64,000 nt of DNA from contig NC_068986.1 of NCBI RefSeq assembly GCF_001194135.2, forward strand, positions 30,736,451 through 30,800,450, written 5' to 3'. Shown one piece after another: positions 3,031-62,100 of the stretch. Below the pieces are notes generated by a model, which searched no databases, was not told where the DNA came from, and was given only the letters and a program-made list of their open reading frames with translations. The translations under genes were made by a program, and so were the position numbers. How positions within the stretch are numbered: the stretch's first letter is position 1; every line of letters starts with the position of its first letter. The DNA is from Octopus bimaculoides. Taxonomy: Eukaryota.

Positions 3031-5608
3031 GGAAGCCAAAAGCAAGGGGTCTACCCTGGTGGTCTGATGCCTATCTTTCAGGAAAGCCATTACAAATTGC
3101 ATCTGTAATGAGCAATGCTTTAATCGAACATTGGGAATATAATCAAATTATTATTGTATATTTAAGATTGTAAATATTTAATCAATACAGCTACTTCACC
3201 CCTTTTATGTTTGTTTGTCCCCTCTTTGTAATGCCTTTATGGCAAATATTTATGAAATAAAGTAGCTTGTTTCCAAACCACATGGTTCCGGGTTCAGTCC
3301 CACTGTGTGGCAACTTGGGCAACTGTTTTCTACTATAGCCTCAGGCCAAACTAAGACTTGTAAGTGGATTTGGTAAGCGGAAACTGAAAGAAGCCCATCA
3401 TATATGTATATATATATATAAGTACATATGTGTCTGTGTTTATTCCTCCCAACATTGCTTGACAACCATTGACGGTGGTGTGTTTACGTCCCTGTAACCT
3501 AGCAGTTCAGCAAAAAAGACTGCTATAATAAGAACTAGATTTACAAAGAANNNNNNNNNNGTCCAACCCATGCTAGCATGGAAAGCAGACGTTAAACGAT
3601 GATGATGAAGTGAATATTTGTGAATTTGGTATATTGATATAGTTTGTCATGTTTAATCTGACTCTGATTCATTTATTCTAGAAAAATTTGAGAAAAATGT
3701 TACAGAGGTTTAAAGTTTGATCGTTTTTACCCAATCAAGACAATAGGATTTGTGCATGATAGCAGACATTAGAAGACAAAGTTTTAAACAAAAATGAAAG
3801 CAACTGCATGCCATATGAAGAGAGTGGGGGAGCAGCATGTGTGAGAGACAATACATATACAGAGAGAACGTGATCTATAAGTTGAGTTATTTCTCATGGC
3901 AAATTTTTTTTTTTTTTTTTTNNNNNNNNNNNNNNNNNNNNNNNNNNNNNNNNNNNNNNNNNNNNNNNNNNNNNNNNNNNNNNNNNNNNNNNNNNNNNNN
4001 NNNNNNNNNNNNNNNNNNNNNNNNNNNNNNNNNNNNNNNNNNNNNNNNNNNNNNNNNNNNNNNNNNNNNNNNNNNNNNNNNNNNNNNNNNNNNNNNNNNN
4101 NNNNNNNNNNNNNNNNNNNNNNNNNNNNNNNNNNNNNNNNNNNNNNNNNNNNNNNNNNNNNNNNNNNNNNNNNNNNNNNNNNNNNNNNNNNNNNNNNNNN
4201 NNNNNNNNNNNNNNNNNNNNNNNNNNNNNNNNNNNNNNNNNNNNNNNNNNNNNNNNNNNNNNNNNNNNNNNNNNNNNNNNNNNNNNNNNNNNNNNNNNNN
4301 NNNNNNNNNNNNNNNNNNNNNNNNNNNNNNNNNNNNNNNNNNNNNNNNNNNNNNNNNNNNNNNNNNNNNNNNNNNNNNNNNNNNNNNNNNNNNNNNNNNN
4401 NNNNNNNNNNNNNNNNNNNNNNNNNNNNNNNNNNNNNNNNNNNNNNNNNNNNNNNNNNNNNNNNNNNNNNNNNNNNNNNNNNNNNNNNNNNNNNNNNNNN
4501 NNNNNNNNNNNNNNNNNNNNNNNNNNNNNNNNNNNNNNNNNNNNNNNNNNNNNNNNNNNNNNNNNNNNNNNNNNNNNNNNNNNNNNNNNNNNNNNNNNNN
4601 NNNNNNNNNNNNNNNNNNNNNNNNNNNNNNNNNNNNNNNNNNNNNNNNNNNNNNNNNNNNNNNNNNNNNNNNNNNNNNNNNNNNNNNNNNNNNNNNNNNN
4701 NNNNNNNNNNNNNNNNNNNNNNNNNNNNNNNNNNNNNNNNNNNNNNNNNNNNNNNNNNNNNNNNNNNNNNNNNNNNNNNNNTACATATGTGTCTGTGTTT
4801 ATTCCTCCCAACATTGCTTGACAACCATTGACGGTGGTGTGTTTACGTCCCTGTAACCTAGCAGTTCAGCAAAAAAGACTGCTATAATAAGAACTAGATT
4901 TACAAAGAATAAGTCCTGGGGTCAATTTTTTAGACTAAAGGTGGTGCTCCAGCATGCCCGCAATCAAATGACTGAAACAAATAAAAGCATAAAAGAGTTT
5001 GATCAATTTTATAATTTTACAACCATTTGAATGCATTGCGAAAGAATTCTTTATTATTAAACAAAAATAATTTTTTTAAAAGCAATATTATTTTCTTTAA
5101 TTATATTTACCAATAATAATAATTGCATGATGATTTTTTTCTCTTTTCATTTTTTTCTTTTTTTTTGAAAGAATGTAGATTTGTATAATTTCCACTAGAT
5201 TTCAGTGGCTTGGTACAGTTGAGAAATAATTAAATAATTTCAGACCCAATAGAAGCCTTACACGTAAAATGGCCATTCCTTAGAATGCTTCCCATTTTGA
5301 TGCTAGCAACATTTTAGATTAATATTGCCCAATACACAAAGGAGTCAGATCTGTTTTAGTATCATACCCAATTTCCATCACTCAGTTTTTTTGTTTTTTT
5401 CAAATATTAAACAGATTTCATCCCACTTACACTTTCTTGAGAGGGATGAAATTAGTTCTGATGTTTTATATCCATTGGAGTCTTTTGCATCGTATAACAT
5501 GAGCCAAATATGGTCCATTATATTTTTTTATATATATATTTATTTTATTTTATTTTTTTTTTATATATAAAATTAGATATTTTGGTCTTCCTTTTTCGTT
5601 CATCAAGG

Positions 5609-18610
<13,002 letters not shown>

Positions 18611-23880: not shown

Positions 23881-26800
23881 ATGGTAAGGAATGTAAAATT
23901 ATTCTGTCGCTAAAATCTGCTGTAAAAAATGGTATTTCATTTCTAAATTAAATTTATTTCTCTTTTGGCTTTAACTGGGGGAACTTAGAACGTTATTCTG
24001 TTATATAAACTTTAGTTTTAATCTTGTGAAATCGTTTAAATTGTGAAATTTATTCCCATCGTTTTTCAACATGGCGTGATAGAAATCTTTCCTAAATGTA
24101 ATCATCCTAACCACGTTTCTCTTTTAATAATTATTATCTTTTTTGTCTCTCACACGATTTCTAATTAGTAAATATGATGGTTCTCCAAAGTCATGAATAT
24201 TTGTTTAAAATCGATGTTTAAAAAAAGATATCCTTTATATGTGAAAATCCTATTTTAAAACCTTCAGCTCTATATCATCATCCACGTGTTATCAACTTTT
24301 CACCCACCACACTCGCTTAACAATCAAGTGAAAGGCTTTTTTTTTTTAAAGTCATATAAAGTTGTTGCTTAATTGTATATTCTAAATTTTTTAATGGCAA
24401 ACCAAAAAAAATTATCTTTATGAATTTAAGCATCGCCTCTCGGTCTGCATTTGTAATTTATCGAGAGTATTTTGGAACAAATGAAATGAGTTTTATTGAT
24501 AATTTCTTGGGGATGGGGTGGGGCTATACGTGCATCTTTTTAGGTGGTTAAATTTTTATTTACAGCTGAAAATCCTGAAAATGTGTAGATTCTTGAAAAA
24601 TATATAAAAAAAAAAAACAGCCGATTATGTGGCATGCTTCGGTAAAAATATATTCAAACGACTCCCTTCTGAACCCTTTCCCTCATCTATGAGGATCCAA
24701 ATCTGCCGACACTAATTAACTAGTTCTTAAGTTCGGATGCGTGGTTAGGGCAGCGGACTCGTGGTCATAGGATCGCGGTTTCGATTCCCAGACCGGACGT
24801 TGTGAGTGTTTATTGAGTGAAAACACCTAAAGCTCCGACGGAATGGCGGCGAACCCTGCTGTACTCTTTCATCACAACTTTCTCTCTTACTTCCTGTTTT
24901 CTGTTGTGCCTGTAATTCAAAGGATCAGCCTTGTCACACTGTGTCAGGCTGAATATCCCCAAGAACTACGTTAAGGGTACACGTGTCTGTGAAGTGCTCA
25001 GCCACTTGCACGTTAATTTCATGAGCAGGCTGTTCCGTTGATCGGATCAACTGGAACCCTCGATGTCGGAGTGTCAACAACAAATTCGGATGCATCCTAG
25101 AACGTAAATAATTCACGCATCCAGGATTAAAAAAACCAGTTACGATCTAAGATCAGAAGTGATGAAATTATAGTGTAAAAGGTTAATACGAAATGCTTTT
25201 ATCCTGAAAGACCGAGCCCTCGTCAGAAAAATGTTATTAATTATGGATTCTAATTTTTAAGAATACTGCATTGCTTGCTATATATATGTTTGAAAATATA
25301 AATCACACGTGCATCGTTTTTTTTTTTAATTCTATAGGTGTTCAATCGGAAATTCGTGGAGGTGGGTCGTGTGGCCTACATCGTTAAAGGTGTAGATTCT
25401 GGGAAATTGTGCGTCATTATCGACGTTATTGACCAAAACAGAGTAAGTTAAAACTTTTTCTGGAGGTACACTCAATGTTTTTAAAATACCAGGTTGTAAT
25501 GTTCTTTTTGTAGTCTGAAAATTGGTTTTCCTGCAGTTTCAAAATTATTGAACATGATGTTAAAATACGGAAGTGGTCTGATTGATAGAGATGACAATTT
25601 TCATTACTGATATCATTAGTTTTGAAACTGAAGGCTACAAAATATAGCAAATTATCTGATAGTTTAATATAGTTTATCGATATATTAGCGCTAACACTCT
25701 ATCAAAGATAATGTTTTGACAGTGTCGTGTTTTATACAGTAATTTATATATACTGGTTTGTTTCCTATTTTCATTTAAGAAACCATGACATTTTGTAAAT
25801 ATGAAATCGTGAACTGAGTTAAACATAGCTGAAAGGATGAATGTGCAAAATGCGTTTGATTTATTCTTTTCAATTAGTAAACTGGAATACAGTTTATGCA
25901 AGATATTAATATCTAGTGAAAAACTTTCCTTATCAACTTATGAGAGTGGAGTGGTTTGTATATGGACACATACAGATATGTGCATAAACATATGTATACC
26001 CCAATAATTGCATAGTGTGGTCCAGATGGACTATATGTAATTTGAACCTTTCCCCCCATGTTTTATTTATTTTTTTACGGAATCCCACGTTTTAGGCTAT
26101 GGAGATTCCGATTCTGAAAGAAATTTTTCAAAATTTTTTTTTTTCAGAATCGGAATCTCCATAGCCTAAAACGTGGGATTCCGTTAAAAAAATTAATAAA
26201 TAAGGGGGGGGAAAGGTTCAGATTACATATAGTCCATCTCTACCGCATAGTGTTATAAAGAAATAAAAATTTACATTGGTTGGGAGTGATGTTGAGATTT
26301 GAGAAACTAGGGGCTGGATTTCACAGAGACAACACAGACCTTTGAATATTTTGTGTATATCATCCTTAATATTTGTCAAGTTTAAGTACCATCCTAATAT
26401 ATGCTTGGCATCTTAGGTATCTGTCTTCCATTATATCCTTGAGTTAAATATATTGTGAATGAGATTTGATGGAGAAAGAAAATCTATCAGACTTGTATGT
26501 TCCTGTGTTTTTATATGTCCTTTGACTTAGTGGCTTATCAAAAAATGATTGATAAAATACCAGACTGCAATAAGTACTGGGGTTGATGTGATTGACTAGA
26601 ACTCTTGAAGGTGGTGTCCCAGTATAACTGCAGTCTAAGAATTGAAGCTAGTAAAACATATAAAAAGAAAACTTTTTTTTAAAAATTTTCTATCTAACCA
26701 TGTTTCATAATTATAGGCTTTGATTGATGGACCATGCAGTGGTGTCTTAAGAAAAGCTATCAATTTCAATAGTGTACATCTGACAAGATTTGTCATCAAG

Positions 26801-29800
26801 ATCAGGCACTCTGCAAGAACCATTGAAGTGAAAAGAGCTTGGGATGCTGCTGACATAACTGGTAAATGGTCTCTGACGAAATGGGCTCAAAAGATTATGG
26901 CAAGAGAAAAGGTTTGTGTTTTCTTTTTTATATTGTGAATTCATTGCATTCAGAACAGATAAACAAGAATTGTTCTCTGGTGTTCCTTTCTTGGGAACCT
27001 TTAAATTTGAGTGGGTTAGCTATATAGAGCTAGAAGTGACCAAGAAATGAGTTGGTGTTAAAAAGATCAATCCACAGGATTCAATCCTTCTGCATGTATG
27101 TTCAAAATGTTATTTGGCTGAAATGTAATTTCATGTAATCTAAGTCTTCAAAGTTTCAAAATTATTGAACATGATGTTAAAAATACGGAAGTGGTCTGAT
27201 TGATAAGGAAGACAATTTTCTTTACTGATATCATTAATTTTGACACTGAAGACTAGAAATATCTGATAAGTAATTTTAATGGTATAATAATTGGCACAAG
27301 CAATGGGAGAAATGTCAAAAAGATTTTGCATCTTAGGTATTGATGATTATAAAAAATATTTTAAAGATAAATAGTGGGGATATCTGTAAGGAAGAAATTT
27401 TTTCATGAAACATTTCTAGTCTAATAATCGCTATCAGAAACGTATAATTTGATGGGGTGTTTCATGTCATTTAGTGAATTAATATGTAACTTTTACATTT
27501 ACTGACTAAATTTCACAGTAATTTAAACCAATTTTGGTTACAATTCTGCAAAGTGTTTATAAAGGTGGTTTTCATTAAAATAATAGATTTTTACACAAGT
27601 AATCAGTAAATCTAGTGTCAGACATTGAAATTTCATTTTTGGCCTATAACTCCCACCCTTTGTTAGCTTCCAGATATTTAGAAAAGAATGGAATAAGAGA
27701 CAAAGCTACATGGTTATGAAACGTATGTTGTTAGCTACACCTGCATCAATTATACACAAACACAAACCCAATTAGAACGTGATGAGAAATGGAAGTGCCG
27801 TCTGAATTTATAAGAGGACAAACCTTCATCTCTGAGTGTCCAATTTGGTGTATACAGAAGGAAATTTTCCTACCTATATATGTCCAGTAGGGGGGGGGGG
27901 ATTACGCGCTATTATATCTTAGAATTGTGTCAAGACCATTATCAGTTTTTCCTTTCTGGTAGGAAGCTAAATATAAGGGGGAAAGGTAAGATGGTAGTGA
28001 TGGGGTTCCAGAGCAAAATCAACAAATAGATGATATAGATTGCAGGTTAATAAGGGTGAGAGGGGAGAGTACAAAAGTGAGGTGTGGCTTGAAGGAAAAT
28101 ATCTGGATGGCAAATATTATGAGCAAGGCTTACGAACAGTGTAGAGGATGAGGAATTATGTTAGGGATGAAGTTGAAATGAGATGCAATCACTATGCTGT
28201 AATTGGTGGTTAGCATTTACTTGCATGACTTCACAGTTGCTTGGAGGATATTTGGTCAGTTCTTAAAGGCTTATTTAATGTTAATTGTGCTCTCTGCATT
28301 TATGTGTGTAGCAGATAAATTTTGTTAGAACATGATGAGACCTGGAAGTGCCGTCTGAACTCTCAGGAAGACGCTTTCAAATCTGAGTCTATATGGCATC
28401 TTTGGTTAATAGCTTGAAGAGGATTAAATGAAAACTACTTTTAGTGTTTTGGTGGTTTAAAAAAAAAAATGTTAATTTTTATAGCTATAACAACAAAAAT
28501 ATAACTAAATATTGCACAGATTTGTAGCTGTTTGAGATACTCATTATGAAGATGGTTTTATTAGTCCCCTCTTTGTTGTAGTTCTTGACTTTGGTTGGTA
28601 CCAATCTGTTCAGCTTTGATATTGAAATGTTAGATTAGCTGAGACATGATGCTCCAGTAATATCTGCTGCACATTGTAAAGCCTGGGTAAAATTTCTGAC
28701 AGTCCAGCACATGCAAGTTGCTGATGGTTAAACAATAATTAATGAAGGAAAAGGACAATAGCACTCATTGCTTATAATATGTATGGATTAGCCATTAAAT
28801 TATATTATGGTAAAAACCTACAAATAATTTTGTTTACATTGTTATATGGCTTGACTATGATTTCCTGTAATTTAAAAGTGTCTTCAATGTTTCAAAATTA
28901 TTGAACATGATGTTAAAAATACGGAAGTGGTCTGATTGATAGAGAAGACAATTTTCTTTACTGATATCATTAATTTTGACACTGAAGACTAGAAATATCT
29001 GATAAGTAATTTTAGGGGTATAATAATTGGCACAAATCACCATCAGAAAGGTATAATTTGGTGGGTGTTTCATGTCATTTAGCGAATTAATATGTAATTT
29101 TTACATTTACTGATTAAATTTCACAGTAATTTAAACCAATTTTAAGAAATTAGTTATAATTTTGGAAAGTGTTAACAAAGATCATTAAAATATATCTTTA
29201 CTCAAGTAACTAGTGAGTCTAGAGTTTTCTCCCTTGTGCAGCGATTTAAATCTAGTGTCGGGCATGTATTTTTGGTTTATCAACATATAATCTCAACCCT
29301 TCAAGATATTTAGAAAGGAAGCTACATGGTTACAAAACAATCTGTGGTCACTTAACCACGCCTACATCTGTTACACACAAACCCAATTAGAGCGTGATGA
29401 GAAATGGAAGTGCCGTCTGAATTCATAAGAAGACAAACCTTCATCTCTGAGTATCTAATTTGGTGTATACAGAGAAAAAATTGTCCTACCTATATATGTC
29501 GGGTGGGGTAGATGGTACCTAGCTATTTTAGAATAGTGTGTCAAGACCATTATCCAAGTTGTGTTTTTTTTTTCTTTCTGATAGGTAGTTAACTATCAGG
29601 GGAAAGGTAAGGTGGTAGTGATGGGGATTCCAGAGCAAAATCAACAAATAGGTGATATGGATTGCAGATCAGGAGTAGGGTGTGGCTAATATGTGGGGAA
29701 TGAAGGGTGAAGGAAAATATCTGGGTGGCAAAAATAATGAGCAAGGCATACGAACAATGTAGAGGATGAGAAATTACATTAGAGATGAAGTTGAAATGAG

Positions 29801-31855
29801 ATGCAATTACTATGCTGTAATTGGTAGTTAGCATTTACTTGCATGACTTCACAGTTGCTTGAAAGATATTTGGTCAGTTCTTAAAGGCTATTTAATATTA
29901 ATTGTGCTCCCTGCATTTATGTGTGTAGCATAAATAAATTTCGTTAGAACATGATGAGACATGGAAGTGCCGTCTGAACTCTCAGGAAGACGCTTTCAAA
30001 TCTGAGTCTATACGGTATCTTTGGTTAATAGTTTGAAGAGGATAGAATGAAAGCAATACTCTTAGCAATTTGGTGTGTTTTGTTTTTATTTTTATAGCTA
30101 TGACTTGATTACTGTTGTTGACAGCAAAAATGTAACTAAGTAATATTGCACAGATTTGTAAATGTTTGATGTACTCATTATGAAGATAGTTTTGTCTCTT
30201 CCTTGTAGTTCTTGACTTTGGCTGGTACCAATCTGTTCAGCTTTGATATTGAAATATGTTAAATTGAGACATCAAATTCCAGTAATATCTGGTACACATT
30301 GTTGGGTAAAACTTTGCATTGGCAATGAAATTATGGATCCTGTTATTCTGCTAGAAACTAGATTACTTTTGTCTATATGGTATGTTTAACAAAAAAAGAT
30401 TTAAAAAGCCAGTATGTACATTTACCTCATAAATGAAATAATGTTGCTGGTGTTTCTACAGTATCATTTTTACAATTTTCACCACTTCCTAGTTAAATCT
30501 TCATAAACGTTCAAATTTTAATTTGGACATTTTCAGTGTTGGAAAGGACAATGTTCTTGGTTCTTCCCTTGTACCAGTTTGTATTTCCTTCATTTCTAAT
30601 TAATACTTCAATACTCTTGCACCATAAGTATTACATTCCATCCTTTCTTGATCTCCATTGCTTCATAACTACTATCAAAGCTTTCCTTATAGTAATTTAG
30701 TGTTAAACTTTAGAACATGAATGTCTATAATTTTGCACCAAATGTTTACAGAGAGCTGCTGACACATGTAGTGAAATAGAAGTGGTTCTGTTAAAAATAT
30801 TTTGAATATTTGTTAATGTGATTTAAAACTAATTAGAACATGATGAAACTTGGAAGTGCCGTCTGAACCAATGTGAAGACAATCTTCAAACCTGAGTAAT
30901 CTTATTAGTGAAGTCATATAACATTTGAAATATCTTTAATGGAGAGTGAAATACTGATAGTCTTGAAATTACAGGTTTTGAAAATCTGGCTCCTTTATAT
31001 GGATGCTGTCTTGAAATTGTGCATTTCCCAGAAATGATCCTCAATGATGGCAACCAGCATTTGGATAGGCTTTTTGAAAATCATGTTGCTGTAACATTGG
31101 TTTTTATCCCTCTCTTTCTCTATAAACAGTTATTGCTAGGATGCATTTAATCTTGTATCTTTCAAATTAGCCAGTTTTTTTTCATTTTACTTTAACCCTT
31201 TCATTACTATATTTATTTTGAGATGCTCTGGGCTTCTTTCAATTATTTTAAATATAACAAAGAATTTAGTAAAATAACTTAGTTATTATTAAGGTAGTGT
31301 TAGGAACATAAATTGTGACTGAGGTTTGGTGGAAGATTTTAATTCTAAATTTATGAAAGCAAGACACTTGTACTACAGAGCCATAGCTAGTTTCAGCCTG
31401 GTTGGTAACGAAAGGGTTAATCATTAGTTATATATGATGCATGGTTATTAAGTCATTTAGAAATCTGGTAACTTCCATATGAAGAAGTGAAATCTAGGGT
31501 CATGTCCTTTTCTTTCTCTTTTGTAGCGAGCAAAGATGACAGATTTTGACCGATTCAAATTGATGCGGGCTAAGCAAGCGGTAAGATAATTATTTTATAC
31601 ACTTCTTTCTTTAGTCTTGGCTACGGGCCAAATGTTAGTGCTTCAAATTTCTCATGTTTCACTGTTTTGTTTCTTAGAATAAATACTATGTATTTTTATA
31701 TTTGTCAAATTTATTCCATTTAATTAATCGAAAAACACTTCTTTTTTCAGAGAAATAGAATTGTTTCTCAAGAATTTAAAAAGCTTAAAAAGAAGCAGAA
31801 GGCTGATAGAAAGCTCAAACTCAAATCTAAGCCCAAAACAGTTGTAAAGCAATAA
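23881..31855 (+). CDS. RPL14: 60S ribosomal protein L14 (eL14), 5 exons, 153 aa
   Basis: Exons 23881-23883 (ATG only, then GTAAGG), 25338-25442, 26717-26911, 31527-31580, 31751-31855, all phase 0 GT-AG. Protein [73 protein letters not shown].. is the eL14 signature. Confidence 0.97.
24735..25080 (+). mobile_element. tRNA-derived SINE in RPL14 intron 1
   Basis: tgcgtggttagggcagcggactc (A box), ggtttcgattccc (B box), then a GC-richer body. It is not a complete tRNA cloverleaf. Confidence 0.65.
25549..25615 (+). ncRNA. U49-like variant box C/D snoRNA, copy 1 (RPL14 intron 2)
   Basis: C-like ATGATGT 25554-60, guide ATACGGAAGTGGT, D' CTGA 25578-81, AGATGAC, D CTGA 25607-10. It has U49 architecture but lacks CC in the guide. 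Confidence 0.65.
26019..26245. mobile_element. Fold-back MITE in RPL14 intron 2
   Basis: ~95-bp near-perfect arms (26024-26116 / 26143-26239), flanked by the direct repeat CATAGTGT (26011-18, 26246-53). Confidence 0.82.
27166..27233 (+). ncRNA. U49-like variant box C/D snoRNA, copy 2 (RPL14 intron 3)
   Basis: ATGATGT 27171-77, ATACGGAAGTGGT, D' 27196-99, GGAAGAC, D 27225-28. Confidence 0.62.
27774..27840 (+). ncRNA. SNORD49: Box C/D snoRNA U49/SNORD49-like, copy 1
   Basis: Box C GTGATGA 27779-85, guide TGGAAGTGCCGT, D' CTGA 27802-05, C'-like AGAGGAC, D CTGA 27832-35. The guide pairs with 28S GUCGGCUCUUCC, with the +5 G opposite the C of CGG[C]UC. Confidence 0.85.
28327..28391 (+). ncRNA. 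SNORD49: Box C/D snoRNA U49/SNORD49-like, copy 2
   Basis: C ATGATGA 28332-38, guide TGGAAGTGCCGT, D' 28355-58, GGAAGAC, D 28383-86, terminal stem TAGA/TCTA. Confidence 0.87.
28902..28969 (+). ncRNA. U49-like variant box C/D snoRNA, copy 3 (RPL14 intron 3)
   Basis: ATGATGT 28907-13, ATACGGAAGTGGT, D' 28932-35, AGAAGAC, D 28961-64. Confidence 0.62.
29389..29455 (+). ncRNA. SNORD49: Box C/D snoRNA U49/SNORD49-like, copy 3
   Basis: C GTGATGA 29394-400, guide TGGAAGTGCCGT, D' 29417-20, AGAAGAC, D 29447-50, terminal stem TTAGA/TCTAA. Confidence 0.87.
29946..30010 (+). ncRNA. SNORD49: Box C/D snoRNA U49/SNORD49-like, copy 4
   Basis: C ATGATGA 29951-57, same guide, D' 29974-77, GGAAGAC, D 30002-05, stem TAGA/TCTA. 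Near-identical to copy 2. Confidence 0.87.
30835..30900 (+). ncRNA. SNORD49: Box C/D snoRNA U49/SNORD49-like, copy 5
   Basis: C ATGATGA 30840-46, same guide, D' 30863-66, TGAAGAC, D 30892-95. It lies outside the tandem duplication and its spacers are diverged while the guide is invariant. Confidence 0.87.
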
Positions 31856-57667: not shown

Positions 57668-59066
57668 GTATATATTTAGATATATATATAAATAAAAACC
57701 TCATCAGTAGGGTCATCTAGGACATTGAAGATTGATGTGAGTGGAATGAAAAGAACCAAACAAAGACTCTACCAGCATCATCAATAGCTTTTCCTTCAAT
57801 TTGTCTTTACTGTTGACCTACTTTTCTTGGGTGCCTGACACTTAGTCCTGATACATTGATCTCTATTATTCCCATGCACTTATATCACAACTGTAACTAA
57901 CTAATTACACCTCACTCACTTCTATCTACTGACAAAAGTTAATACCTCTCTCTCTGCAAATATGGGAAATAGAAAAAATAAAATGGATACTTATTGAGAT
58001 CTTAGCTATGAAGACATATCAGTTGTGCTGTAACTAAGCTGCCATTTATATTTTAATTATATATAAACTGTCCAATGACAGCTCCTTGTGTATATCAAGA
58101 ATTACATGATAAAAAATAGATATTGCTTTCACAATGCAAGTTTACAGTTGCTGAATATATAACAGCATGATGTATGAAAAGAACAAACAAAAACATAAAC
58201 AGTAAACAACCGAACAGAAGCCAATGGTTTGATTGTAAATTTCATTTCAGAATATAACTTATATATATATATATATATNNNNNNNNNNNNNNNNNNNNNN
58301 NNNNNNNNNNNNNNNNNNNNNNNNNNNNNNNNNNNNNNNNNNNNNNNNNNNNNNNNNNNNNNNNNNNNNNNNNNNNNNNNNNNNNNNNNNNNNNNNNNNN
58401 NNNNNNNNNNNNNNNNNNNNNNNNNNNNNNNNNNNNNNNNNNNNNNNNNNNNNNNNNNNNNNNNNNNNNNNNNNNNNNNNNNNNNNNNNNNNNNNNNNNN
58501 NNNNNNNNNNNNNNNNNNNNNNNNNNNNNNNNNNNNNNNNNNNNNNNNNNNNNNNNNNNNNNNNNNNNNNNNNNNNNNNNNNNNNNNNNNNNNNNNNNNN
58601 NNNNNNNNNNNNNNNNNNNNNNNNNNNNNNNNNNNNNNNNNNNNNNNNNNNNNNNNNNNNNNNNNNNNNNNNNNNNNNNNNNNNNNNNNNNNNNNNNNNN
58701 NNNNNNNNNNNNNNNNNNNNNNNNNNNNNNNNNNNNNNNNNNNNNNNNNNNNNNNNNNNNNNNNNNNNNNNNNNNNNNNNNNNNNNNNNNNNNNNNNNNN
58801 NNNNNNNNNNNNNNNNNNNNNNNNNNNNNNNNNNNNNNNNNNNNNNNNNNNNNNNNNNNNNNNNNNNNNNNNNNNNNNNNNNNNNNNNNNNNNNNNNNNN
58901 NNNNNNNNNNNNNNNNNNNNNNNNNNNNNNNNNNNNNNNNNNNNNNNNNNNNNNNNNNNNNNNNNNNNNNNNNNNNNNNNNNNNNNNNNNNNNNNNNNNN
59001 NNNNNNNNNNNNNNNNNNNNNNNNNNNNNNNNNNNNNNNNNNNNNATGCTAATCCCTGTATATTTA

Positions 59067-59108
<42 letters not shown>

Positions 59109-62100
59109 ATATATACTTGTTAGCTGCTGCATCATCTGCTTGATATTAAGGCTATGGGATTAGTTACATCATTAGAGCATTGGACAAAATGCTTTGCCTT
59201 TTGGTATTTCTTCTGGTCCTTTATATTCTAAGTTCAGATCTTGCTGCGGTTGGTGCTGCTTTTCATCTCTCTGGTACCAATGACATAAATTACCAGTCAA
59301 GTGCTGGGTTAGTGGCATTGATCAATTCCCTTTCCATAAAAATCCTGCACTTGTGCCAAAATTTGAAATCATCATTATCATCATCATCATCAATGTTGCA
59401 ATTAAAGTTCATTGCCAAAAGCAAATGGAACTTATCACTATTTTGTCCAATAAATATATGCAATAAAACAAAAAAAACAAAAAAACAGTATTTGCTTTGA
59501 AGCACGAACAGAAAGCAATGATGCTTCAATGGCAGTGTAACAGTGGATCTGATAAAAAGCTGTTGATCTTAATGGTTCATAGTTGCAACTATTTTTCCAT
59601 ATGTCGATTAAAAGCCTAGCAGGAATTGCCAGATTGGAGAAAATAGATTTTTATAGATCTGAGAGAAGAGACAGAATAATTTAATGAGTTAAGAGATGAA
59701 GCCATATTTTGTCTTTTGAAGAAAATATTTGTTTAGCACACAAAATATTCTCTGTGTGATTATTTCTTTTAAAGATCAATTTACTCTTAACCCCGAGGAA
59801 AAAGAGTGTTGAATTTATAAAGAATTATGAGCATATATACCTGAATATAGGATTTCCTAGGAAGGAAAACTGTCAATATTATCATAATTTTATATCTTAT
59901 CATTCAGAAATTTTGAACATTTTCCATTTGAAACTGTGTTCAAATTTTGAAGAAATTACCTAAAATAGTTGTAGACAACAATCCTTTTGAATTTAAGTAC
60001 AAAGAGAGGAAAATCAGACACAGAATTTGTGTATCCAACTCAGCTGACTGTCTTTATTTACTTGGCCTTCAATGTAGAAAGCTAATTCCTATATGTTATG
60101 GAGATTTTGGTAATTCTGAGTTTAAAATTATTCAAAAGACAAATGCATGTAAGGTTTTTTTGGGGGGATTGGTGTAGGATGACCAACTTAAAGGGGTTGA
60201 AAATTAACTGCAAAATGTTGACTATTATGCTGGGTTAAATACTAAAGAACAGATTCCACTATTCTGATGTGGGAAAGTAGAGTAGTCAGACATGAAGATT
60301 TTTGAGACTATTATTGAAATAATGTCTGTTCAAACAAGATTTTAGTTTTTTCAATTGATTGAAGAATTAAGAAAAAAATAGAGGTGGGAAGTTTTTAGGC
60401 TCATCATATTGCGTATTGCATAACTTTTGAACTTAAACTATTATAGATTTTGTAAAAATATTTCTGGTTTTGATTTATCTGTATAACTTTGAGAATTTTA
60501 ATTAGATATTCATTTGATAAAATATATGATCATAATGGTTTTAATGTTAAAATTCAGAGTGGCAAAAAATCGTAGTTGTTTGTATGTCAGATCTCAGTGT
60601 TTACTATTTTGTTTGGAGAGATAGATTCCACTGTGATGCTTAAATGTTGGTTATATCAGTGAAAGACTATACAGCTGACATGTACTATAAACTTGACACA
60701 TTTTGCCCATGACACCTCAAATTGATATGTAGTTGTGAAGGTCACAAGTCTAGGAGAGGACTTAACTCATTGTTAGTTACATCATGAACACACTTGTCCA
60801 TGTTTGTCCTAACAGTAGATCATAATGAGAACAAATTGTAAAACTCCGAGCTGAAAACTCTTATATAATGTGATGTAAGAAAGTAGGATTTTATAAAAGT
60901 CATTTTGCAGGCCTTTTATAAACATGTTTGCATGATGGCAAACTGGTAGTCATTAGAGAGTGAAAACCTTGTGGTATTTGTTTAGACTCTCTGCTCAGAT
61001 TTGCCTTTCATTCTTTAGAGCTCAATAAAAAATAGTTATCAGTCCAGAGCAGTGGCTTGACAGAACTGTAACTGTGTTGGACCAGGTGTCTTGTTGTATT
61101 TGTTCTAGCTCTTAGCATTCTGAGTTCATTCCCCCCCCCCCATGACTTACTAGGGTATTACACTTAGTCCATCACCCAGTTTAAGGCCACAATCTGGCAC
61201 TTTCAGTACCTTTAGTGGAGTCTACTTTGTTGCAAGCCATCGGACTAGGTTTTTATCTTGAGGATAACCTACCACCACTTCTACAAGTCTCTGGGGCAAT
61301 GTAAAAAGAAGTGGGCACTGTATTGCCACCTAATTCTTTTATTCTTTTACTAGTTTGTCATTTGACTNNNNNNNNNNNNNNNNNNNNNNNNNNNNNNNNN
61401 NNNNNNNNNNNNNNNNNNNNNNNNNNNNNNNNNNNNNNNNNNNNNNNNNNNNNNNNNNNNNNNNNNNNNNNNNNNNNNNNNNNNNNNNNNNNNNNNNNNN
61501 NNNNNNNNNNNNNNNNNNNNNNNNNNNNNNNNNNNNNNNNNNNNNNNNNNNNNNNNNNNNNNNNNNNNNNNNNNNNNNNNNNNNNNNNNNNNNNNNNNNN
61601 NGGGGGGGACAAACACACAAACACATCTATCTATATATATACATACATACATACAAAGGGCTTCTTTCAGGTTCCATCTACCAAATCAATTCACAAGGCT
61701 TTGGTTAACTGAGGGTTATGATAGAAGACACTTGCTGAAGGTGCCATGCAGTGGGACTGAACCCGGAACCATGTGGTTGGGAAGCAAGCTTCATACCACG
61801 CCTGTGCCTACTTTTCACCTAAGTGAAAGATATACAGGAAAATTAAAGAAAAATGAAGGCCATTGATAATGATGAATGTTTAAATTTGTAGCAAATGAAG
61901 AAGCATTAACTTTTCATTTTATTTGGATTAATTTTCGTGTTTATTTTTGTGTGATTAATTCCTGAAACTGGGAAATTCTTGTTTAGATTAACTTTCATGT
62001 TATATATTTTGTATGATTACTGTCTAAAACTGGGAATTCTTTTATTTTCTAAGAGTATGTCAGACTTTTTTTATCCAGTTATAGATTACAAAATATGTAA

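Follow-up and report, generated by a model that had tools for sequence, protein, structure and literature searches.

The window analysed here, a 64-kb stretch of the Octopus bimaculoides genome, contains the RPL14 gene for the ribosomal protein eL14, and the third intron of this gene carries on its sense strand two copies of an element in which a 3′ and a 5′ splice site lie only 22–23 nt apart. The original prediction described them as two micro-exons between copies of a U49-type small nucleolar RNA (snoRNA) gene, each with a pyrimidine-tract/AG acceptor and an AAG/GTAAG donor (a slash marks the splice boundary throughout), and direct reading located both exactly at the positions claimed. We refer to these candidate cassette micro-exons as ME1 (23 nt, 27963–27985, + strand) and ME2 (22 nt, 29585–29606, + strand). 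Their splice-like signals are strong, rarer than chance, and constitute one duplicated element. Judging from signal strength, rarity, conservation and the sense orientation within a presumably highly transcribed gene, we tentatively regard the element as a cryptic or “poison” micro-exon of low inclusion, with a silent pseudo-exon being nearly as likely.

Splice signals and conservation of the duplicated element

Both candidates reside in intron 3 of RPL14 (26912–31526, + strand, phase 0, 4.6 kb), which also houses the snoRNA array described below, and each is flanked by a U49-A and a U49-B copy. ME1 reads tttttcctttctggtag/GAAGCTAAATATAAGGGGGAAAG/gtaaga, with the acceptor AG at 27961–27962 and the donor GT at 27986–27987. 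ME2 reads ttttttttttctttctgatag/GTAGTTAACTATCAGGGGAAAG/gtaagg, with the corresponding dinucleotides at 29583–29584 and 29607–29608. We scored splice sites with an approximate position weight matrix (PWM) of our own, compiled from textbook frequencies and representing a generic consensus rather than one trained on octopus. By this generic PWM, both micro-exons possess 3′ and 5′ splice sites of functional strength in sense orientation, with acceptor/donor scores of 10.0/10.2 for ME1 and 11.9/11.5 for ME2, whereas the real exon 3 (26717–26911, + strand) has weak sites scoring 3.8 for the acceptor and 4.0 for the donor (AAG/GTTTGT). The donors of ME1 and ME2 are the two highest-scoring donors of the entire intron.

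No further acceptor–donor pair of at least ME1 quality, 10–60 nt apart, was found on either strand of the window (122 kb examined), and first-order Markov simulations gave an expectation of 0.065 such pairs (10–30 nt apart) per 61 kb strand. Because of this rarity, both observed and simulated, the ancestral element is unlikely to be a chance juxtaposition of splice signals. The occurrence of two copies adds no weight to the argument, since ME1 and ME2 are paralogues within one tandem duplication, the units of which are 82–97% identical (83% over the 145 nt around the elements). The “paired” micro-exons of the original prediction are thus two in number but go back to one ancestral event, not to two independent ones.

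In each unit, the pyrimidine tract, the micro-exon and about 60 nt of the downstream intron form a conserved block (block 1, 27945–28045; block 2, 29566–29667; both + strand). We propose that ME1 and ME2 are paralogous copies of one element of ~100 nt, which would have been born within the tandem snoRNA repeat unit of the Octopus RPL14 intron 3 and which would comprise full-strength 3′ and 5′ splice sites 22–23 nt apart, followed by ~60 nt of conserved intron. Skipping would be the default, and only a minority of transcripts would have the element spliced in as a cassette micro-exon. Since neither micro-exon length is divisible by three, such inclusion would create a premature stop and render the RPL14 mRNA unproductive. 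The element would not be needed for the release of the snoRNAs. As a ribosomal protein gene, RPL14 is presumably very highly transcribed, and for this reason even inefficient recognition of the micro-exon should leave products.

We compared the RPL14 loci of Octopus vulgaris (locus L001), Octopus sinensis (L002) and Argonauta hians (L004), the only other cephalopods whose eL14 was returned by the protein search. O. vulgaris and O. sinensis each carry one 22-nt copy between U49-A and U49-B (ttttctttctgatag/GTAGCTAAATATCAGGGGAAAG/gtaagg), the O. sinensis copy starting with ATAG in place of GTAG. These copies are located at 12001–12022 of L001 and 11821–11842 of L002. Their acceptor/donor scores are 10.9/11.5 and 9.0/11.5, respectively, and block 2 is 88% identical to positions 11942–12093 of locus L001. 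The AG and GT dinucleotides are intact in all four copies from the three Octopus species, which measure 23, 22, 22 and 22 nt.

Conservation was quantified on an alignment of four sequences covering the repeat unit, with the coordinates of unit 2 as the reference and gap columns counted as variable. The acceptor (−17 to −1) is 88% invariant and the donor (−3 to +6) 89%, together 23 of 26 columns, and the downstream intron (+7 to +60, 54 nt) reaches 87%, as opposed to 70% for the exon body. For comparison, invariant columns make up 94–97% of the snoRNAs, 70% of the adjoining spacers and 56% of all spacers taken together. By Fisher's test, conservation of the splice signals exceeds that of the adjoining spacers (p = 0.03) and that of all spacers (p = 0.0005), whereas it does not differ significantly from that of the exon body. 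Retained signals and flanking intron around a drifting exon body are the pattern expected of a non-coding exon that is spliced, and the alignment is no more than suggestive in this respect. A conserved downstream intron is also typical of regulated short exons.

The conserved stretch extends farther. The spacer between the micro-exon and U49-B (28090–28330 and 29708–29930) is 93–95% identical between the two units and is better kept in O. vulgaris than other spacers; an Rfam scan of 27838–28327 gave no match with an E-value below 1. A hairpin of H/ACA type at ~28180–28235 was considered and rejected, since an uncompensated change in O. vulgaris (ACGAAA) disrupts the lower stem (ATGCAA/TTGCAT). 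Regarding the origin of the block, we discarded a transposon, with no further copy present within the window, and the duplication of a real exon boundary, with exons 2–5 aligning only through T-runs.

Reading frame of RPL14 and the case for a silent pseudo-exon

We spliced the RPL14 message in silico with ME1, with ME2 and with both, and additionally with the O. vulgaris and O. sinensis copies. Inclusion of ME1 gives MAREK-EAKYKGESEQR-stop (ending in MAREKEAKYKGESEQR) and inclusion of ME2 gives MAREK-VVNYQGKASKDDRF-stop (ending in MAREKVVNYQGKASKDDRF). In both cases, the reading frame terminates in exon 4 (31527–31580, 54 nt, + strand, acceptor score 13.5), 41 nt and 31 nt before the exon 4/5 junction, respectively. 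Inclusion of both micro-exons adds 45 nt, which is in frame, but the joint AG/GTAG creates AGG TAG and the product ends with EAKYKGER, 72 nt before the last junction. A premature stop results from all three combinations and from the copies of the two relatives as well. The prediction that lengths other than multiples of three would make a single inclusion shift the RPL14 frame is thereby confirmed in silico.

It had also been claimed that inclusion would trigger nonsense-mediated decay (NMD). Under the mammalian exon junction complex (EJC) rule, NMD needs a stop more than ~50–55 nt upstream of the last exon junction. Measured against this rule, which may not be that of cephalopods, the distances of 41 nt (ME1) and 31 nt (ME2) fall below the limit and only the 72 nt of the double inclusion exceed it. 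NMD upon single inclusion is therefore not assured.

Several observations weigh against a spliced micro-exon. Exons of 22–23 nt are inefficiently defined by the splicing machinery, and the PWM on which the strength of the signals depends is the generic one. The Octopus species compared are close relatives (~84–88% identical in the block) and the sample is small, which limits the power of the conservation test. In Argonauta hians, only the U49 genes align; the micro-exon block is not detectable there, nor is any comparable pair of splice signals between U49 copies. In all four copies, base pairing is possible between the pyrimidine tract and the purine-rich exon end, and this could mask the acceptor. 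Finally, no truncated eL14 with a micro-exon tail appears among the top matches of the protein search, where about the third rank would be expected; the weight of this absence is small because gene predictors rarely report NMD isoforms.

Several of these points favour a silent pseudo-exon, which we consider nearly as likely as a micro-exon of low inclusion. According to this alternative, the motifs would be unused and would merely stem from an inverted repeat of pyrimidines and purines (TTTCTTTCTGATAG ... CTATCAGGGGAAAG) that was duplicated together with the snoRNA unit, and their conservation would reflect the closeness of the species. The hairpin found in every copy, the shortness of the exon and the missing tailed protein are in line with it, and so is the stretch from the micro-exon to U49-B, which is 73% invariant overall with blocks above 90%, so that the splice signals are not uniquely conserved. 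Moreover, O. vulgaris and O. sinensis have amplified snoRNA units from which the block is deleted, and the five U49 copies of Argonauta do without it. However, the inverted repeat accounts for the AAAG before the donor but not for the GTAAG after it. Pairs of equal strength are lacking in the rest of the 122 kb examined and are rare in simulations, and the signals are better conserved than the adjoining spacers. Total silence of the two best donors of the intron in a presumably highly transcribed gene would, in addition, require active repression. The masking hairpin itself was rejected as a conserved structure, with z-scores of only −0.5 to −2.8 against shuffled sequences and two changes in ME1 that are not compensatory. 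Being present in Octopus and absent in Argonauta, the element appears to have arisen in the Octopus lineage, and a cryptic or poison micro-exon included at a low level is the interpretation to which we give a cautious preference.

The snoRNA array and processing of intron 3

Intron 3 contains seven C/D-box snoRNA-like genes, namely two copies of a gene that we call snoX and five SNORD49-like (U49) genes, all on the + strand. The order snoX, U49-A, micro-exon, U49-B occurs twice with a spacing of 1608–1736 nt and is followed by U49-C. In the first unit, snoX-1 (27165–27272; C box 27171–27177, D box 27263–27266; no Rfam family) precedes U49-A1 (27775–27837; 25.8 bits against Rfam RF00277), located 125 nt upstream of ME1, and U49-B1 (28328–28388; 20.0 bits) begins 342 nt downstream of it. 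In the second unit, snoX-2 (28901–29008), a member of repeat family D1 and 97% identical to unit 1, is followed by U49-A2 (29390–29452; 25.9 bits; exact guide GGAAGUGCCGUC), 132 nt upstream of ME2, and by U49-B2 (29947–30007; 18.9 bits), 340 nt downstream of ME2. U49-C (30836–30897; 24.1 bits) comes last, and the exon 4 acceptor follows 629 nt downstream of it.

The name U49 given to these genes in the original prediction is supported by the C and D boxes UGAUGA and CUGA and by the exact 12-nt guide of the family upstream of D′, boxes and guide being retained in every copy across four octopod species; the scores of 18.9–25.9 bits against the SNORD49 model (RF00277), on the other hand, remain under its gathering score of 37. 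snoX is a C/D-box snoRNA-like gene of ~105 nt with three copies at the locus, one in intron 2 (25550–25662) and two in intron 3. It matched no family in Rfam, although its D′ guide (ACGGAAGUGGU) is similar to that of U49. The snoX copies are 98–99% identical in O. vulgaris and are not detectable at the Argonauta RPL14 locus. Two O. sinensis copies lack the D-box CTGA (ATATCTGTAAT, ATAACTGTAAT) and may be decaying.

The micro-exons had been credited with splitting the intron such that each lariat carries a single snoRNA. Counting excludes this: one snoRNA per lariat is neither achieved at this locus nor required in the lineage. The two micro-exons would divide the seven genes 2/3/2, i.e., snoX-1 with U49-A1, then U49-B1 with snoX-2 and U49-A2, and finally U49-B2 with U49-C, and no other exon candidate was found in the remaining inter-snoRNA gaps, including the one from U49-B2 to U49-C, even at relaxed thresholds. 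Intron 3 of O. vulgaris and of O. sinensis contains ten snoRNA genes and one micro-exon, and that of Argonauta hians (L004 6116–11121) lacks such an exon while housing five U49 copies that are nearly identical to one another. The human SNORD49A and SNORD49B likewise share a single intron of SNHG29, and ~15% of human snoRNAs have at least one other snoRNA in the same intron (PMC9622897). As to position within the intron, the octopus genes also depart from the vertebrate arrangement. Vertebrate C/D snoRNAs are optimally placed ~70–80 nt upstream of the 3′ splice site. Outside this optimum lie the two U49-A genes (125 and 132 nt to the micro-exon acceptors), U49-C (629 nt to exon 4) and the snoX copy of intron 2 (~1 kb). 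Even if the micro-exons are silent, the locus shows that octopods routinely accommodate 5–10 C/D snoRNA genes within a single intron of a coding gene.

The higher gene count of the relatives is due to three extra units (L001 7690–11300; L002 7560–11130), each consisting of snoX and a U49 hybrid whose 5′ flank is of type A and whose 3′ half is of type B. Judging from this composition, the hybrid units arose when unequal crossing-over joined U49-A to U49-B and removed the micro-exon block, and they were amplified afterwards. The 3′ halves of the Argonauta U49 copies are unlike those of the Octopus subtypes, and the U49 array has expanded independently, or been homogenised, in each octopod lineage.

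The outcome of the count bears on a regulated switch, as envisaged in the original prediction, in which alternative splicing coupled to NMD (AS-NMD), possibly autoregulated by eL14, would uncouple snoRNA output from eL14 output by way of one snoRNA per lariat. The frameshift with its premature stop agrees with such a switch, and the conserved flanking intron could hold the site of a regulator. There is a precedent in Caenorhabditis elegans, where unproductive isoforms subject to NMD come from eight of 82 ribosomal protein genes and where L10a autoregulates its own splicing through binding to a conserved element within an intron (PMC4937301). For the uncoupling of host-gene and snoRNA abundance, the explanations proposed include alternative splicing and selective NMD (PMC11028025). 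Nevertheless, we judge this switch to be improbable, because the snoRNA count fails in all the species compared, the stop at 31–41 nt from the last junction makes EJC-type NMD doubtful upon single inclusion, and the element is confined to one genus, Octopus, whereas that of L10a is deeply conserved.

ME2 had further been proposed as a recursive splice site. ME2 begins with GTAGTT, and its ligation to exon 3 would rebuild a donor AAG/GTAGTT scoring 5.6, compared with 11.5 for the ME2 donor and 4.0 for the exon 3 donor; the O. vulgaris copy would similarly rebuild AAG/GTAGCT (6.1). No donor is rebuilt in ME1 (AG/GA, −3.8) or in O. sinensis (AG/AT, −4.7). The motif is therefore real in ME2 but present in only two of four copies, and we give recursion little weight because the AG/GT is not conserved.

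A more general possibility is that the element serves as a waypoint of intron processing. Intron 3 might be removed recursively or stepwise through the AG/GT of ME2, or the micro-exon might act as a toggle, skipping of which would leave a long non-coding RNA of ~615 nt with snoRNA ends (sno-lncRNA) and use of which would separate U49-A from U49-B. The rebuilt donors of ME2 and O. vulgaris exceed the natural donor of exon 3, and the interval from U49-A to U49-B is the best-conserved spacer of the unit. In mammals, two snoRNAs within one intron yield sno-lncRNAs, and alternative splicing of mouse RPL13A creates one by placing SNORD33 and SNORD34 into the same intron (PMC4234469, PMC11028025). 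Even so, we assign a waypoint a low probability. Besides the absence of the AG/GT from ME1 and O. sinensis, the downstream donor of 11.5 against 5.6 predicts inclusion under the donor-competition model, in which a stronger downstream donor favours inclusion over recursion (PMC8605326), and recursive sites are mainly found in long introns (PMC8605326, PMC6110457), whereas intron 3 spans only 4.6 kb.

Taken one step farther, the micro-exon could be a genus-specific switch between two outputs. When skipped, U49-A and U49-B would share one intron and the segments 27775–28388 and 29390–30007 would survive as sno-lncRNAs; when included, the snoRNAs would be separated and the RPL14 message rendered unproductive. 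Such a switch, which we regard as quite improbable, would link the supply of eL14, the supply of U49 and a sno-lncRNA in an invertebrate.

The RPL14 gene and comparable systems

The assignment of the host gene is based on a search with eL14 by tblastn and on a reading of the splice sites, all exons being on the + strand; the encoded protein of 153 residues is 100% identical to the 60S ribosomal protein L14 of O. bimaculoides. Exon 1 contributes only the ATG (23881–23883), with an alternative donor after a second ATG (23929–23931). Exon 2 (25338–25442) and the exons 3 and 4 mentioned above follow, and exon 5 (coding part 31751–31855) carries the TAA stop. The two alternative donors in exon 1 (23881–23933), ATG/GTAAGG at 23883/23884 and ATG/GTATTT at 23931/23932, correspond to two O. 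sinensis gene calls, and the second leaves a short upstream open reading frame. We dismissed the micro-exons as the source of the NCBI names “isoform X1/X2”, for which the two exon 1 donors, both ending in ATG, are the simplest explanation.

Intron 1 contains a GC-richer block (24700–25110) opening with a tRNA-like sequence (gggcagcggactcgtggtcataggatcgcggtttcgattccc), in which ARAGORN finds no tRNA; the block is probably a tRNA-derived short interspersed nuclear element. In intron 2, a near-perfect palindrome of ~180 nt (26060–26240) has several Rfam matches to miRNA precursors, far below the gathering scores (best MIR2619, 67 bits versus 113), and resembles an inserted foldback or miniature inverted-repeat transposable element, not a miRNA gene. 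Runs of N (2882 in total) depress the apparent GC content in the bins at ~4001–6000 and 58001–60000; these are assembly gaps and not biology.

If real, the splicing of ME1 and ME2 would belong to a known phenomenon, the unproductive splicing of ribosomal protein and snoRNA host genes (PMC4937301, PMC11028025). It would provide a cephalopod example of a ribosomal protein gene that is spliced unproductively, and a rare poison exon born within, and copied along with, a tandem snoRNA repeat. Among the papers searched, none dealt with octopus snoRNA host genes and none reported unproductive splicing of a cephalopod ribosomal protein gene. The interest would be modest and would reside in a dated, lineage-specific view of how a poison exon originates. 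With the ribosomal protein genes regulated by AS-NMD, the octopus candidate has in common that an alternative mode of splicing leads to a premature stop and that conserved intron lies beside the alternative site. Those genes use alternative 5′ splice sites, whereas the octopus candidate would be a cassette exon of 22–23 nt, predicted from sequence and found in one genus, and RPL14 is not among the reported cases.

The processing of clustered snoRNAs offers further parallels. The short, poorly conserved exons of non-coding host genes of the UHG/SNHG1, GAS5 and SNORD116 type are constitutively spliced, each snoRNA residing in its own intron. Like the octopus locus, UHG/SNHG1, GAS5 and the SNORD116 units of SNURF-SNRPN (PMC11028025) are repeats of a snoRNA plus a short exon, in which the signals are kept while the exon body drifts. 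The octopus unit, however, is itself intronic, its host being a coding gene, and has an exon candidate in only one of every three inter-snoRNA gaps. In mouse RPL13A, with SNORD33 and SNORD34, and in human SLERT (PMC4234469, PMC11028025), an exon between two snoRNAs decides, as it might in octopus, whether they share an intron. The exon of RPL13A is a normal coding exon and its skipping is rare, whereas skipping would be the default in octopus. Recursive-splicing exons and ratchet points (PMC8605326, PMC6110457) resemble ME2 and the O. vulgaris copy in that acceptor and donor are juxtaposed (AG/GTAG) ahead of a short exon which has a donor itself. The octopus motif, however, is not conserved among the copies, the donor that it rebuilds is much weaker than that of the exon, and the intron is short. 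A further parallel is human SNHG29 (PMC9622897), where SNORD49A and SNORD49B represent the same family as a pair of paralogues within a single host intron. SNHG29 is non-coding and has no exon between the pair, whereas octopods house the family in RPL14, with 5–6 copies.

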